DNA of 64,000 nucleotides from Trichosphaerium sp. ATCC 40318. Its lineage: Eukaryota; Protista; Tubulinea. Location of the stretch: the NCBI GenBank assembly GCA_038496445.1, contig JALMLS010000418.1:224264-288263 (forward strand), in the 5' to 3' direction. Shown piece by piece: positions 33,542-46,294 of the stretch. The notes under the pieces were generated by a model. It did no database searches. It was given only the letters and a program-made list of their open reading frames with translations, and was not told where the DNA came from. The stretch's first letter is position 1. Every line of letters begins with the position of its first letter. Both the position numbers and the translations under genes were made by a program.

Positions 33542-35572
33542 TTAAATTACGATAGCAGGTTCTAACTCTTTGTCGAGTAATTCCTGAGCGTAAGGGAGCC
33601 AATATTGGCTTGTGCGAAGCTCTACAAAAATATTAGTAAAAGAAAAAGGAGATCTCATATTCGTACCAAGTCCGAAAGCGTTGCCCATACCACGCATGAG
33701 CACTGATACTCTAGCGGCCATTACATATTCTTCTGCCAAATGTACTATAGGATCTGTTTCCTCTGCCCAATCGAGAAATTGTTGTACATTGCGGTTACCA
33801 AGAACATCTTCTGAAAATCTATCGTTCCAAAAGCAAGCAAGCTTGTATAAAATTTCTGGCTTGTTACGCTTTGTTTCTGCTCCTAAGTCCTCATGGAATA
33901 CTCTTACAACTTCTTCTTTATCATCTTTAGCCAAAGCAACCATAAGTTTAGCAAACTTCACACGTGTCACTTTGTCAATCGTCTTAACTTGACCATAATC
34001 TATGTAAAAAATTAGCCAAATGTTTAGCCACACTCGCCTATTAGCCCAATTCTACCATCCTCCAGTAGCTATATTATACCCATTAAATAACCGCGCATGT
34101 GATGAGCATTATATAAACGTACCATGATATTGCCAGGGTGAGGATCACCATTAAACTCTCCATCTACAAAAATTTCATGACCATGAACATCCATAAGAAG
34201 TTCTATCATCTCGCCCAAGTTAGGTGGTAAAACAGACTCTTTGTATTCCATATTTGGCGCTAACCAACCAATACTCCAGTTGTATATAAACCTTAGAGTA
34301 TTTAATGTATAATCATAAGTGTGTATCATCTGATGATATCTCTTCATGTCAGCATTTGCTTCAGCTGCATTTTTAAATTGACGGTTTCTTATTTTTTCTT
34401 TTTGTTCAGCTTCAAGTTCTTCAACTGTTGTTCCTTGTTGCTCAGCGTATGCCTTGAAATTATCACGAAGACCATCAACGAGTTTAACACCTTTAAGCAA
34501 ATCCATAACGAGTACTTCTTTGTACATAATTCGAGTACTGGTTTAGGTACTACAACTTTATCTCCCCATTTAGGTGTTATATTCTCCGCTATACTCTCCA
34601 AGTTACTAGCCTCTCCAACGTAATCAAATTCTGTCAAGAATTGCTACATGGAAAAGAGAGGTATAAGCACAAGAAAAGAGGATTGATGAAGAAAAGTGAG
34701 GTGAAAGATTCGTTACCTTTTCAATCTCTTCCAAAGGTTTTACATGTTGAGGCATTGCAAACGAACAAAATGTTTTCATTGTTTTTAAATCTGAACGGAA
34801 CCTTTGTTCTATATTTGGAAACATAACTTTAACAGCAACTTCCTTTCCGCTTCCCAATAACCTAGCACGATGAACCTATACAACAACAATCAAATCAAAG
34901 AAAAAAAAGTTGTCACGTAAAAAAAATCCTGTCACACGTGACAAGTACTTACTTGACCGATACTAGCTGCACCAATTGGCTCATCATCCCAATACTCAAA
35001 TACCTCGGAGATGGGTTTACCCAAAGACTTTTCTACAATAGCTCTAGCTTGTCCTTCTTCAAACTCAGTCGGTACCTCATCTTGTAGTTTCTTACACCAC
35101 TACGAACACGTGTTAATACAAAAAAAACACGTGATTTTCGTACAGCTAAATACTGGCCAGGCACAAAAAAGTCTAGAACGCTTAGGAGTTGTGCTTGCTT
35201 TAAATAAAAGCCTCGAAGTCTTAAACAAAGCTTTTCTACTACTGGAGCGTATCTAACATGTGGTGAATTCACTGATGCGTAGAATAGCGTAGAATAGCGT
35301 AAAAGACGCCTAGACATACATGTCATGCAGTTTATCAAACTCTGCGAGTGTTTCCTAAGTCGTTTAGCTATATTTTTGTTATTTGATAGTACTTTTTCTG
35401 AAAGGTCTTTTGTTTGGTACTGTAGGTATCTATAGTGAACGTAGATTGGAAAAACTTTACTCCAAAAGGTCATTGAACGCCTAGATCCTTCATCAAAGCT
35501 ATAAGCAGCTCCGCCGCCTGCTACAACTGTTCCTGCCGCGCCTAGAGCTATTCTACTCAACAAGAAGGCCAT
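33542..35572 (-). CDS. ABC1/ADCK (UbiB-family) atypical kinase, probably mitochondrial
   Basis: LRGFYLKQAQLLS, PIGAASIGQVHRA, VAVKV, EFDYVGEASN, FNGDPHPGNI, IDYGQVK. Confidence 0.92.
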
Positions 35573-37412: not shown

Positions 37413-37648
37413 ACTTGTCCACCAAGAAAAAACCAAGAAAAAAATAAAAAAGCCAATGAACTTTTCGGTTGTCTTCAACAACAAGCATATCACTTAATTA
37501 CTTGAAAGGTCCAAATCTACGTACACATTTCACAAAATATAGTGTACCAAAAATAATCAGTTGACCAGTGTCAAACAAAGTGTTTTATTTTCGTGTTTTT
37601 TTCTTTTTGTTGGTAATATGTACACTTTTTTTTTGGTTTTAACTTCTT

Positions 37649-40600
37649 TTAACTTTGCTCACTGTCATCACTTTCCTCTTCACTACTAAAGCTCTCATTT
37701 TGCTCAGCAAACTGTCGTCGTTTCCTCTCTCGGATACTACTAGTTCTAAGAGCTCTTGGTTTTGGAATACGCTTTTTCTTTGTGTCAGGAGGTCCTGTAG
37801 GTGCTGCTTTCTTTCTTGCACTCAACGAACTAAACAGAGATAAATAAGTAAAATAAGACACGACAACAATGAGAACAACACTTTCTCGTATTTTACAAAG
37901 GACCACTAATAACGTTTTCATGGGCATACCAAAATTTTTACAAAAAAAAATCAATGGACATACCTTTTTTGTTTATAATGTACTAGATGCTCTGTAGAAT
38001 TCCTTCGTTGTGCTGCATCAAAATTCTTTATCATTCTTTTCTTTTCAGGTGTACTTGTAGAACTTATTGTTTCAGGCGTGGATCCAACAGTCTTTGATTT
38101 ACCTGAGAAAAAACAGTTAAAACAAGTCACTGAAAAAAGAAAATATCTCATACGTTTTGTAGTTCTTGGACTGTTTGAGTCATCAGTCATTACTAGAGAA
38201 GAAGAGCTACCGCTCCCTTGAAGGGAGGTTTCTACTTCATGACCAGAAAACACATCATCAGTTGGTTCTGATTGAGATGGGCTTGATTTACCAGTACGAG
38301 CTGCACGCCTTGTTTTTCCCTTAAGGGTACGTTTAGACTTTGATCTTGAAGGTTTCTTCTCCTCAGCTCCCATAGATGGACTAGCTGGTCCATTCCTTCC
38401 TTCTAATGTTTGCCCTTTTCCATGGATATTAAGAACATTATCACGTGGTGTTTTTGTTGGATTTTCACCAGAATGTTCTGAAATGGATATTTTATCTCCA
38501 TCTTCTTCTTGAGTTGACTCAGTAGCTGATTCGTTAGCCTCTGGGATATCTTCAACTGAAGTTGCTTTCCTTGGGTGTTGCGAGAAGAACTGTGATAAAA
38601 CTTCTACATCAAAGCCTTCAGGTAGACTAGCAAAAAGAGGATGCTTAAACAAACCATCAGCAAAGCCAAGTGTATCATATTGCATACCTTTAAGAGATCA
38701 ATAGACTCCGGTCTATCTGCTGCGTTTCTTGTCATACACTGCTCTACAAAACTTACAAACTCAGGTTTATAGAGTCCAGGTTCTTGCAATCGAGCTGGTT
38801 CCTAGGTTGTGGATAAATAAATGATCGAAATATGTCGAAAGATAATTTTGGTAGGTCAAATGGGATACAAGCGTACTTGTGAAGATATCTTAAAGAGCGC
38901 AGATATTGGTGGACGATCGTGATAAGGTGGTTTTGTCTCTGCTAGCTCAATACATGTAACACCTAAAGACCACACATCTACCTTTTGAGTATGGCCATCT
39001 TCCATAACAATCTCTGGTGCCATCCTACAACAAAATTAAAAAACGAACATTCCATCGCTCATGAAGTGATTAAAACATACCAATGAGGTGATCCTACACT
39101 AGTATAACGTTCTATCATATTATTCACCTGTGCAGATATCGAAAAATCGGCTAAATAGAACAGGTAAGTTACTTTCTTTGATTAAGTTGCATTTTTTTGT
39201 AAAGTTGACTTACTGAGTTTACAAACACCACCAGTTTTAGCTAAAACATTAGCAGCTTTAATGTTTCTGTGTATACGATTATGCTTATGAATAAAAGAAA
39301 GAGATTTGACTAGTTGTAACATAATAGCTACAATACACTCTTCAGGTATAGGACCACCAATACGGTCCATAAGGTCTACTAAAGACCCTATATCACAATA
39401 CTCCATGACAACCTAAATCTCCGATTTAGCTTTTTTTCGAAGCGAGAGGCACGAAGACAAAAAATCAAAGTTGAGGTTTTGAAGGTAAAAGGCTTAGATG
39501 GTAAACATCTGGTTTCGTGTACCCATGGTTTCTTGTTCCTCATGTAAACTCCATGATATTTTACAATATTAACATGTTGTAAATCATTCAATGCACGTAA
39601 TTCTGCTTCTAATGACTTGCAGTTGATATTTTCATTAAATATCTTAATAGCTACTTTATCTGTAGAGTCTATCTGATGTGCACAATAAACAGTACCAAAT
39701 GCACCTTTACCAAGAATCTCGCCTGAACAAAAAAAACCAATAAATAATTTGCATTCAAGTACGAACAACAAGAGCTCATGTTATAGAGTGCAACTCAAAT
39801 TTAAAAAATCCTTCTTACAAAGAAGGCGCACGTACCTCTTTGAAATATTTTGGCAGGATTATTCTTATAGTAAATATCCTCTGGAGAACTCCTACAAACA
39901 ACTTGTTAGCACCACAACAACAATAAAAATAAATGAAACATTTAGTGTTCGTACTGTGTCACTTCATATTTTAGAAGAGAATTTTGAGTCCTTAGAGCAT
40001 CTCGCTCTTCTCTCAGCTCAGTCAATTGCGCTCTATGAACAAGTCATTACATTGGCTGTTTTTAAAACCATTAAAGAGATTTAACACGAACCTGACTCTT
40101 GTGAGCTCTTCTGTGTTCATAACTGCTCCGTTACGATCTTTCTTGCTTAATTTCCTTTCAAGAGCTTCTATAGACTCACTAGAAAGGAAAGATGTCTCAC
40201 TCAACGCCATAGATGATGTAGCATCTTTAAAAACAAATATGTCAAAAAAAATAGTTTAGAAGTTGATTTATAAACATACCTATAATACCAGGCGCTGCAG
40301 CACCTGTCCGTCTAAACTGAGCGACATAATTATTACCCATTTGGGATAGAGACATTTGCAAGAACATCTTTTAAGAAAAATCGGTTAGAAAAACGCTAAA
40401 AAGAGCCAAAACGCTATCAAATATAGCCACAAGAGTGTCAACTAAAACGTTTAACGTACTTTTGATCCATTTCTGTGTTTAGCTTCAATAGTCCTTGATG
40501 TATTCATCATTTTCTGTATTTTGCTCTGTTTGTATGATTTTAAATACTGTTCATGCTTTTTAGGGCTTAAAAACATTAACATCTGCAAAAAAAAGGTATC

Positions 40601-41284
40601 AGGACCTAAGAATCTATATCAACTTCTATGATACTTACTGTCACGTTATGTCCTAGAGCCTCACGCTCATCCCATCCAAACATTTCTTGTGCTGCTTTGT
40701 TAAAGCATACAATACGCCCATCATCGTTGGTGACTACTATTGCGTCTGGTAGGATAGCAAACGCGCTAAAGAACAGGATCAGTACCGAAATTGATTGTGA
40801 TGGTTTTTTTTGTCTGCAACGTTAATTGTTACGCTTGTTTGTTGCAAATAGAGTAGTGTAGAGTAATACCTAAACGGTTCCACATCGGTGGCAGCCACTA
40901 TTAATACCGCAATCCATTGGTCCTATTTCTTTTTAGTTTCAGTACTGGTGGTTGTAGTATGTACCATGTCTGATTTAGAGCGCGTTTGAAGGAATAATAA
41001 TTTACGCTTGTTTATTACAACGAAGCAATGGTCGTGTGCGGCTAGATCTGCTGCTTGGATTAACGCTCCTTCAAGCTTGATCTTTTTCCATGGTCGCTTT
41101 GAAGTAGCCTAAGGTGAAGCTTCAGAGCCTGAACTAGTTGATACGCTTATATAGCACTTACCGCAACGTTGTTATACAATTCTAGGCGATCTGCAAGCAC
41201 TACACACCATTTTTTCTTCCATTTGCTCCCTGTTTTCTTACGAAGGAATCCTTGCTTTAGAATAGGGTCGCTGTTACTTGCCAT
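37649..41284 (-). CDS. PH + FixL-like PAS + STE20-like (pseudo)kinase with Ser-rich basic tail
   Basis: PH: ILKQGFLRKKTGSKWKKKWCVVL...DQWIAVL. PAS: LPDAIVVTNDDGRIVCFNKAAQEMFGWDEREALGHNVTMLM...KHEQYL...SRTIEAKHRNGS. Kinase: LGKGAFGTVY, VAIK, MEYCDIGSL, HRNIKAANVL, DFS, GSPHWMAPE, DVWSLGVTCIELAETKPPY. Last exon frame uncertain (stop at 37649 or 37639). Confidence 0.88.
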
Positions 41285-41807
41285 TTTATTTCTATTAGTT
41301 CATTCCGCGTTTTACGTCACAATGAGGTTTTGAATAAGTACTTTCACACGTATGTATGCGTCTGGAGTAAATAAAGGCCGATGTTACCTGACTTATCCCC
41401 TTGCCCAAAGTAGTTAATTTTCGGAATAAAACTGCTTCCAAAGGAGTAAAACGCATACGATTGCATTAACCCACTCAATGTGTTGTTTAGTTCGGTAGCT
41501 CATAAAGCGAGTAAGCTAAACTCCGTGCTTGCATCCGTAAAACAACATCCTGCATCACGGCACAACCAGTTAGACGCTAGATGCGACTCAGTAAGCTAGC
41601 AGCTAAGAAATTTAGTACATTTACATGTTATGTACTGTACAAAACAAAGGAGTCCTCTTTTCTCGTTCTCACTATTACGTTGTTTGTCAGAAAATACGAA
41701 TTCAAGCAAAAAATGTCTTACAAACCGGGCAATTTGCATCAACAAAAAAAAAATAACTCGAAAAGAATTTAAAATCTGAGTCAAACCATTTGGCAACAAT
41801 ACGCCAA

Positions 41808-44266: not shown

Positions 44267-46174
44267 TTATTTTACTTTTTGGTTGTTTGCTGTAGCTCTG
44301 TTCTCGTACATTTCCTCTATATTTATAATGAGAGTTAACAATGGCTTTGGATTATAAGGGAATAATCCTTTATCATTTAATCTTGCTATGGCATAACGTA
44401 ATCGTATAAGAGTACCAACAAATTTATCAATAGGTTCATCTTTTTTTTTAGTTCCTTCAATTGATATATTACCAAACTTGACCAAAATGTCTTCCTCGGG
44501 GATATCACCTTCATCAAAACCATCCAGAGATATCTCCAAATTAAAGTCTCTTTGTGTAATCTTAAGATACGTTACAAAGTATTGTAGAAAAGAAGTTTCG
44601 TTATCCATAAGTAAGTCAACAAGAACAGAATGATCAAAAGATATTTCACAAAAAAAACGAAAGAGTAAAGCATGTGGGTTGTATGCTTTGAATAAGTCAC
44701 TTATTTGATCATTATTAGCACAATGAACACTTAATCTTGTATGAATATTCAACAGAGAAGACAATACAGATACCATCATACCATCATCAGAGATAAATAA
44801 GGAAATAAGTTGAGAAGGATCGAACTGTTTGAAAAAAGCTAAAACGCAATGTTAGGTAAAAAGATTTTTTCTTTGCTTACCTGAGTTAACTTGGAGTTGT
44901 CCTAATAACCAAGAAATACCTTCTTTCGTATTAGCATATGTCACTTTATCCAAAAGATCAAGTAGAAGTATAATAAAAGGTCGATGAAGTATGCTTGAAT
45001 TATCAACTGGTTTTATGAATTGGCAAAAATCAAAATCATCAAAATACTCTTCATCTTGTTGCTTTGGAACCATTGATGGTATAGCCGATACTAAAGCTGT
45101 AACAATAACACCTATCTATTTAAAGTATAACAGTAAGCAATTAAGATAAATTAAGATATATACAGTACCTGATCGATATCTTCAATGTGAGGCATATACG
45201 TTTGTAAGATTTTAATACATCCCAACCTTAGTTCAACCCACCCTATAGAATCTTTACCAGATGATTTAATAATAAGCAGTAGCTATTTATGTGTTAGTGT
45301 ATCAGTTATGCAAGGTCGTAGCTACATACACGGAGCACTACTTTGTGAAATTGTGAAATCCGATCAACTGGGTCAACATTGCTTAATAGCGTTGCTATAT
45401 TGATGTATCTTTTAAACAATGCCAAGTGTTGTTGAAACCTTAGAGGATGCTCGATAATGGACTGAATAGATGCATCATTCAAGCGACAAATACTAACTGA
45501 AATAATCCCGTGAATATCAATCTGTGTCAAAAGAAGACGCAAAATATCATGACGTTCCTGAAAAAAGTAAGAAAACAAAACTATTATCGTGTACAACGCA
45601 CGTTGTCCAGCACGTGTTTTATGACACGGCATAACCACCAAAGTGACGTACTATGTTGTTCTGGTGTATAAAACGGAATGCGAGCGATGACTATAGTGAG
45701 TAAACGTTGATTGACGTTAATGTCGTTCCAATCAAGCATAACTAGATCTGCAAGAATGAGGCCTTTGCAATGCTTTAGCTATCGTTTTGAACACAAGAAA
45801 ATGTACCTGCGACGTGGCTCGTTACTCTGTTGCCTTGTTCCCACAGTTTTAAAACCGTTTCGTTTATGTCGTTTATACACGGTGAAATAATCTGCCTACA
45901 CATTACCCCTACGTGTTCTTCAAACTCTACGTCATCTTTTAGATATTGAATAGCCCTTTGAACGATATTTGCTGATAGTAGAGTTTTATCGATGCTGCTG
46001 TGTTCCTAGGCGTATGCGTAAGCGTAGAAAAGCCAATTAACGTACCCACAAAGGTCTAATAGCCAACGATAATTGTTCAGCGGTTATTTTAGCTTCACCG
46101 CATAATACAGCGCCTGTTGTAACTGCTGCGAATAAAGTTTCGAATTGCCCAAGAGTGTCAATACCAATTTCCAT
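44267..46174 (-). CDS. LINS1: Protein Lines homolog (LINES_N and LINES_C domains)
   Basis: FISDDDGMMVSVL...NPHALLFRFFCEISFDHSVLVDLLMDNETSFLQYFVTYLK...LIRLRYAIARLNDKGLFPYNPKPLL. Confidence 0.85.
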
Positions 46175-46294
46175 CGTATAAGGCTCAGACGCTAATATCA
46201 AGAGAAGGACAGCGAATGCAATGAACTAACCAAAGAACGACTTTAGCACACTTAATCAAACTGACTTTTAGCAGGCATCTCTTACATTGCTCGT

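Follow-up and report, generated by a model that had tools for sequence, protein, structure and literature searches.

We analyzed a 64,000-nucleotide (nt) stretch of DNA from Trichosphaerium sp. ATCC 40318 (contig JALMLS010000418.1, positions 224,264 to 288,263 of the forward strand), referred to below as the window; all positions are those of the window. Its minus strand contains a gene (41284-37649) whose rebuilt exon model has 17 exons (E1 to E17) and encodes a protein of 837 amino acids (aa). The protein is composed of a PH domain, a PAS domain, a coiled coil of the parallel type, an STE20/MST3-like kinase domain, and a disordered tail, in this order. In the kinase domain, the catalytic Asp of the HRD motif has given way to Asn and the Gly of the DFG motif to Ser. 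Here, we describe these replacements, their presence in RNA-derived sequence, their origin within a small protein family, and what the altered kinase domain may do.

Results

The gene and its domain layout

All introns of the gene are of the GT..AG type, and the joined frame of 837 codons contains neither a stop nor a frameshift. The introns are 42 to 134 nt long (mean, 70 nt), the mean exon length is 148 nt, and the GC content of the window is 37.3%. These values agree with those published for the draft genome of Trichosphaerium, namely, a GC content of 37.69%, introns of 75.4 bp, and exons of 154 bp (PMC10521059). The exons were searched singly against Pfam, structures, and proteins. The joined translation was compared only locally, with fetched proteins, using BLAST, MAFFT, and IQ-TREE. 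The features of the gene and the evidence for each are listed in Table 1.

Table 1. Features of the 837-aa protein gene, with positions in the window
Feature	Position	Strand	Evidence
Whole coding region	37649..41284	-	GT..AG exon model, open frame, 8/16 introns spliced in X1/X2/X3, collinear with P0151 and P0162
E1-E3, PH domain	40870..41284	-	E1 against Pfam PH, E value 5e-5, slightly below the gathering score; aligns with the PH domains of P0151/P0162
E4-E6, PAS domain	40280..40813	-	E4 against Pfam PAS, E value 3.9e-9
Coiled-coil linker, residues 274-306 (end of E7, E8, first base of E9)	39891..40111	-	a/d heptads read from the sequence
E10, kinase N-lobe: GKGAFG, VAIK (K351), alphaC Glu (E365)	39523..39722	-	Pfam Pkinase, E value 1.1e-10
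E11, hinge and catalytic loop HRNIKAAN	39214..39412	-	Pfam Pkinase, E value 3.8e-12; MST3 alignment; X1 RNA contig identical over 39214-39351
E12, T-DFS (D459, F460, S461) and activation loop with T474 (39103-39101)	39081..39150	-	X1 contig identical over 39080-39150; junctions 39150/39214 and 39024/39081 spliced
E13, GSPHWMAPE (STE20 signature), DVWSLG, alphaF region	38877..39024	-	Pfam Pkinase, E value 1.4e-9; junctions spliced on both sides
E14, C-lobe alphaH-alphaI helices with invariant Arg (R560)	38688..38801	-	Alignment with 39 STE20-type domains; junctions spliced on both sides
E15-E17, end of kinase domain (HPLF) and low-complexity tail of ~255 aa	37649..38643	-	Three spliced junctions, including a 51-nt in-frame intron

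Two residues of the catalytic motifs are replaced

On the minus strand, the codons CAC AGA AAC ATT AAA GCT GCT AAT (39271-39248) encode the catalytic loop HRNIKAAN, in which N441 is AAC at 39265-39263. The codons GAT TTT TCG (39148-39140) encode DFS at the Mg-binding motif, in which S461 is TCG at 39142-39140. Both motifs had been proposed at these positions in a first-pass annotation made from the sequence, and the codons agree with it. When E11 was aligned to MST3/STK24, N441 fell exactly on the HRD Asp. In the spliced product, the residue preceding DFS is Thr (KLTDFS), and an Ala arises at this place only by read-through of the acceptor site. The TCG codon is at least two base changes away from any Gly codon (GGN). 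Thus, a single-base error cannot account for DFS, and the change is not brand new.

The remaining motifs of the domain are intact. GKGAFG is encoded at 39711-39694, VAIK with K351 at 39654-39643, the alphaC Glu E365 at 39603-39601, and APE at 39020-39012; the first-pass annotation had listed these elements as preserved, without a frameshift or stop, and the same was found in the rebuilt spliced frame. Residues K443, N446, D459, and F460, the motifs GSPHWMAPE and DVWSLG, R560, T474 of the activation loop, and the His and Phe of the R-spine are also intact.

The kinase domain is spread over E10-E14 and the start of E15. It belongs to the Pkinase superfamily (PF00069), since E10, E11, and E13 each scored above the gathering threshold, with E values of 1e-9 to 4e-12. 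An STE20-like domain had been suggested earlier. In line with this, the GSPHWMAPE signature together with HRNIKAAN places the domain in the STE20 group (GCK/MST-like), and the best Protein Data Bank matches were MST3, STK25, MST4, MST1/2, MINK, TNIK, and TAO2. With respect to GCK-III, the clade of PH- and PAS-containing proteins described below stands apart from the animal STK24 clade, in a tree with an unresolved backbone. In STRAD, GLR stands at the DFG position and His at that of the catalytic-loop Asn; both features are absent here, where the domain has DFS with D459, and N446. It also differs from PASK, which is a CAMK/AMPK-like active kinase, in being of the STE20 type.

By sequence, a kinase domain counts as a pseudokinase if at least one of three residues, namely, the Lys of VAIK, the Asp of HRD, or the Asp of DFG, is missing (PMC4718504). 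The kinase domain of the 837-aa protein falls under this definition, with N441 in place of the HRD Asp and with K351 and D459 kept. The HRD Asp is the catalytic base and is required for efficient catalysis but not for ATP binding (PMC4718504). The change from HRD to HRN, which defines HER3, JAK2 JH2, and PSKH2 (PMC4718504; PMC7586955), usually abolishes or greatly reduces catalysis, some of which is kept by HER3 and JAK2 JH2 (PMC7586955). With N441, K351, N446, D459, and the Gly loop, the domain has the sequence features of the HRN-type nucleotide-binding class, and its ATP binding is predicted to be retained. By analogy, it is closest in logic to PSKH2 and HER3, in which Asn is present at the base and the ATP/Mg-binding residues are intact. 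The first-pass annotation had called the domain a pseudokinase without phosphotransfer and had taken the Asp-to-Asn change as the hallmark of HER3 and the JAK JH2 domain. The name is justified by the sequence definition, and the resemblance extends to HER3, JAK2 JH2, and PSKH2. The absence of phosphotransfer is only probable, because HER3 and JAK2 JH2 keep weak catalysis (PMC7586955).

The nearest relatives have intact motifs

To find relatives, 1.8 billion representative proteins were searched exhaustively by HMMER with E11 as the query. This search contained no close orthologue: its best matches were proteins with multiple kinase domains and generic STE20 kinases, with at most 51% identity, and a similar PH domain, PAS domain, or tail was absent from all 150 best matches. 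A word-index protein search with E11 in the range of 36-115 aa gave zero candidates. The only useful lead from the E11 search was the fragment P0076, which is in a 90%-identity cluster with P0151, a 636-aa protein from a EukProt Trinity transcriptome. When P0151 was used as the query (the whole protein and then residues 1-290), one further family member, P0162, was found. All other matches were kinases of the STK24 type or PAS proteins of bacteria and archaea, and STK24 proteins were the best full-length matches of P0151 (~48-49% identity). No relatives other than P0151 and P0162 shared this architecture in the databases searched. PASK and plant PAS-Raf kinases, which were Atlas feature look-alikes of P0151, were rejected as proteins of the same kind because of their different architecture.

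In both P0151 and P0162, the PH, PAS, and Pkinase domains were confirmed by Pfam (for PH, E values of 6e-11 and 3e-9, respectively). The 837-aa protein is collinear with them across PH, PAS, coiled coil, and kinase, with an overall identity of 36% and a kinase-domain identity of 47-49%. HRDIKAAN and KLTDFGISAQ are present in the two relatives. In a maximum likelihood tree of 41 STE20-type kinase domains, the 837-aa protein, P0151, and P0162 formed a clade (support 99/98), and all outgroups had Asp and Gly at the two positions. Since the relatives and all outgroups are HRD/DFG, the HRN and DFS motifs are derived losses. By its architecture and its monophyletic kinase domain, the 837-aa protein is a member of the PH-PAS-STE20 family, although it does not share the HRD/DFG of this family. 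It is a derived variant within a small, apparently undescribed family.

We also scanned metagenomes with back-translated HRNIKAAN. Only two of the 33 loci found were kinases, and both were rejected as orthologues: L006:875-1715 is OSR1/Fray-like, with HRN and DYG, and L022:2259-4040 is MAP3K-like, with HRN and DFG; neither has a PH or PAS domain. A foraminiferan protein, P0141, has HRNIKASN with DVG. The presence of HRN in these unrelated proteins indicates that the Asp-to-Asn substitution in HRDIKAAN-type loops arose several times independently.

The kinase domain keeps most invariant residues

Across 39 STE20-type domains, 28 positions are invariant. The HRN/DFS domain keeps 26 of them, the only changes being D441N and G461S. 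It also keeps 46 of the 56 positions that are conserved at 85% or more. In the tree, the end branch leading to its kinase domain is 1.19 changes per site long; the corresponding lengths of P0151 and P0162, counted from that same node, are 0.33-0.39. We then compared domains by the ratio of the distance between the 837-aa protein and a relative to the distance between the relatives. The kinase domain had a ratio of 3.95, PAS one of 4.2, and PH one of 2.1; since the first two are similar, a relaxation confined to the kinase domain was rejected. Compared with its relatives, the kinase is the best-conserved domain of the protein (47-48% identity, versus 27-34% for PH and PAS). The pattern fits strong constraint on the structure and on the nucleotide pocket, with a loss of two catalytic-motif residues, and not free decay. 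In the first-pass annotation, HRD in close orthologs combined with selection relaxed in this copy only had been named as the outcome that would speak against a conserved pseudokinase. Part of this outcome was found, namely, HRD/DFG in P0151 and P0162 and an approximately threefold longer branch, but the kinase domain is not alone in its acceleration, and the invariant residues are spared.

The altered motifs are present in RNA-derived sequence

Three public sequencing runs, X1, X2, and X3, were compared with the region 37600-41400 as assembled contigs. Run X1 is transcriptome-like, and its contigs, probably from the same strain as the genome assembly, are 100% identical to the window. Eight introns, those of E8/9, E9/10, and E11/12 through E16/17, are missing from them, with the joints precisely where they had been predicted. 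One X1 contig joins 39214-39351 to 39080-39150 with zero differences, and the AAC and TCG codons are thus both present in RNA-derived sequence. A check of reads at the catalytic-base codon had been proposed; at the contig level, it shows AAC (Asn) and not GAC. Since this contig matches the genome at both motifs and eight introns have been removed, HRN/DFS does not stem from faulty assembly, nor is the gene silent. These results show that (i) the gene is transcribed and spliced and (ii) a genome-assembly error and a wrong splice model are excluded by the X1 contigs. A change private to the strain would still fit.

Run X2 (2023, under a different organism label) contains a spliced variant of the tail exons, 38151-38747. 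Compared with the window, the variant has five substitutions (38463, 38539, 38554, 38578, and 38584), four of which are synonymous and one of which is N629D; in addition, 3 nt are deleted in frame at 38499. The variant copy is carried by X2 and X3 and covers the 3' tail only, with the kinase exons lying outside. Its source could be an allele, a nearly identical paralogue, or another isolate.

Regions outside the kinase domain and neighboring genes

The linker between PAS and kinase comprises 33 residues and ends ~15 residues N-terminal of the kinase domain. Its a/d spacing is formed by L276, V279, L283, L286, R290, L293, N297, L300, and V304, with N297 at a heptad 'a' position. An Asn at this position is typical of parallel dimeric coiled coils. 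The coiled-coil residues L, T, N, S, and L, including N297, are kept in P0151 and P0162. This suggests that the coiled coil with the kept N297 is a parallel dimer that serves as a signaling helix.

In the PAS domain, His175 (40555-40553) is located within the stretch KKHEQYLKSY and resembles the His of FixL. At this position, P0151 and P0162 have Asp (NKDSAFLKK), and they also lack an insert of 5-6 residues after it. Among the three family members, the His-bearing PAS domain is paired with the dead kinase, and the PAS domains of the intact kinases lack that His. In the PH domain, the beta1-beta2 region (E1, 41162-41284) is strongly basic (LRKKTGSKWKKKWCVV) and looks like the PH motifs that bind phosphoinositides; its KWKKKWC is identical in P0151 and P0162.

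The disordered tail (~255 aa) is rich in Ser and Lys and had no match in Pfam. The intron at 38103-38153, which is 51 nt long, in frame, and stop-free, could be read through if RNA data were not considered; it is removed in X1 and X3 contigs. Downstream of the gene, at 33545-35100 on the minus strand, there is a gene for an atypical kinase of the ABC1/ADCK type (Pfam ABC1 on two exon-sized open reading frames). Upstream, at 44270-46225 on the minus strand, a 194-aa exon matches both LINES_N and LINES_C of the Lines family. This family is known mainly from animals.

Discussion

We consider it probable that the gene encodes a real, expressed pseudokinase that descends from a PH-PAS-coiled coil-STE20 (MST3-like) family and that is PAS-regulated, dimeric, and recruited to membranes, acting by binding and not by phosphorylation. 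In the proposed mechanism, the PH domain would position the protein on a membrane, and the parallel coiled coil directly upstream of the kinase domain would mediate dimerization. Via the coiled coil, the state of the PAS sensor would act on a kinase domain that binds nucleotide but is catalytically crippled, and would set its conformation or its pairing. This domain would then signal by binding to an active kinase, perhaps an intact paralogue, for which it would be an allosteric partner, scaffold, decoy, or substrate. Since T474 is kept, the pseudokinase domain could itself be a substrate. We infer that catalysis is lost, that ATP is bound, that the protein dimerizes, and that there is a partner. 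An allosteric or scaffolding output, for example in the control of an MST/Hippo-type kinase, as the first-pass annotation had put it, would be one conceivable form of such a mechanism.

Several points weigh against this explanation. Weak activity persists in HER3 and JAK2 JH2 although Asn occupies the position of the catalytic base (PMC7586955), and by analogy the 837-aa protein may be weakly active as well. The partner kinase remains hypothetical. The branch of the kinase domain is ~3 times longer than those of the HRD relatives, an asymmetry that would also be expected under relaxed constraint. In a Tajima relative-rate test with vertebrate MST3 as the outgroup, 44 versus 11 lineage-specific changes were counted (p ~1e-5); with several protist outgroups, the result was weaker or not significant. 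The Asp may have been lost fairly recently, in which case earlier selection could account for part of the kept invariant residues. No HRN/DFS orthologue was found in the protein searches or in the metagenome scan, and any selection since the loss of the Asp is therefore hypothetical. The RNA support consists of assembled contigs of probably the same strain and not of raw reads.

The first alternative is a low-activity or atypical active kinase, in which slow phosphotransfer with the Asn base, by autophosphorylation or in a tight complex, would leave phosphorylation as the output of the sensor. We regard this as rather unlikely. It would agree with the intact residues on the ATP/Mg and substrate sides (K351, E365, K443, N446, D459, GSPHWMAPE, and T474) and with the residual catalysis of HER3 and JAK2 JH2 despite HRN/HGN (PMC7586955; PMC4718504). 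Moreover, HRD and DFS occur together in other kinase domains among the matches (P0023, P0058, and P0030), suggesting that DFS alone is not disabling. However, the catalytic Asp is invariant in 39/39 of the STE20-type relatives compared, its change to Asn usually abolishes or greatly cuts catalysis (PMC7586955), and N441 is accompanied by a second change at the invariant Gly of DFG.

The second alternative is that the kinase domain is a drifting, disabled remnant: the gene would be kept for its PH and PAS domains or would be heading to loss, and HRN/DFS would have no function of its own. The frame of 837 codons, open over 17 exons, and the transcription and correct splicing of the gene make this quite unlikely, as do the 26 of 28 invariant and 46 of 56 highly conserved positions kept. 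The kinase domain is also better conserved than PH or PAS and not specifically accelerated, and the X2 variant has four synonymous changes versus one nonsynonymous change and an in-frame deletion, counted in the tail only. Drift would nevertheless account for the HRD/DFG state of the nearest relatives, for the approximately threefold branch, for the Tajima test that is significant with some outgroups, and for the failure to see HRN/DFS conserved in any orthologue in the searches described above. Finally, an artefact, in which HRN/DFS would be false and stem from a wrong splice model or from an error in assembly or sequencing, can practically be discounted: the evidence is contigs rather than raw reads and X1 is possibly from the same strain as the assembly, but the transcript-like contig agrees at every base of 39080-39150 and 39214-39351, the flanking junctions are confirmed, DFS is at least two base changes from DFG, and a tblastn search of the window with P0151 and P0162 found no alternative exon.

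An expressed pseudokinase acting by binding could also be part of a gas or ligand switch. Here, a putative heme-type PAS domain would act through the coiled coil on an ATP-binding, dead STE20 domain, which would pair, in the manner of HER3/HER2, with an intact PH-PAS-STE20 paralogue encoded in the same genome and turn it on or off at phosphoinositide-containing membranes. This more specific version seems unlikely to us. If it were true, the protein would be a eukaryotic sensor with kinase-domain allostery, not phosphorylation, as its direct output. A PAS domain that really binds heme would make the gene a link between gas sensing and the allostery of a kinase domain; otherwise, the protein would be a further lineage-specific dead kinase.

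In well-studied kinomes, about one kinase in ten is a pseudokinase. The 837-aa protein is most likely a dead kinase that serves as a switch or scaffold, which is a rather ordinary type of result. To our knowledge, there are few cases of a ligand-sensing domain directly on a pseudokinase. In the PH-PAS-STE20 family, intact and dead versions from one small, undescribed protist family can be compared. Because the dead version departs from the STE20 consensus at only two invariant positions, it is a clean natural case of a transition from kinase to pseudokinase, like that of PSKH2.

Comparison with known systems

P0151 and P0162, which are known as protist-transcriptome proteins, share with the 837-aa protein the order of PH, PAS, coiled coil with the kept Asn, and STE20 kinase, as well as KLTDFxISAQ. 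They differ from it by HRD and DFG, by much shorter tails, and by Asp at the position of PAS His175. They may be orthologues or relatives of a paralogue.

Among described pseudokinases, PSKH2 of the vertebrate CAMK group has the change from HRD to HRN as its only disabling feature, with the other catalytic and ATP-positioning residues being canonical, and it has an active relative, PSKH1 (PMC7586955). As in the 837-aa protein, a kinase became a pseudokinase by a change of the HRD Asp to Asn. In contrast to it, PSKH2 belongs to another kinase group, lacks PH and PAS domains, and has an intact DFG; it is an analogue, homologous in the kinase fold only. HER3/ERBB3 and JAK2 JH2 likewise have Asn at the catalytic base, bind ATP, and pair allosterically with an active kinase (PMC4718504). 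HER3 (Asn815) binds ATP tightly and works by allosteric heterodimerization (PMC4718504). Both belong to the tyrosine kinase group, and HER3 additionally lacks the alphaC Glu, which is kept in the 837-aa protein. STRADalpha and STRADbeta share the fold of the STE20 group; they bind ATP without catalysis and activate LKB1 via an active-like conformation (PMC4718504), and their ATP binding is independent of cations (PMC4718504). They have GLR for DFG and His for the catalytic-loop Asn, whereas the 837-aa protein has D459 and N446, and STRAD was not close in the searches.

The active kinases MST3/STK24, STK25, and MST4 (GCK-III) and MST1/2 were the best solved-structure matches for E11 and share G(T/S)PxWMAPE and the activation-loop Thr with the 837-aa protein. 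They lack PH and PAS domains, and the HRN/DFS domain is ~38% identical to theirs and lies outside the animal MST3 clade. A PAS domain N-terminal to a kinase is found in FixL, PASK, phototropins, plant PAS-Raf-like kinases, and Phytophthora PAS-MAPK (PMC3019232). In contrast to the 837-aa protein, these have active outputs of the histidine, CAMK-like, AGC, TKL, or MAPK type; none combines PH with STE20, and none is a pseudokinase.

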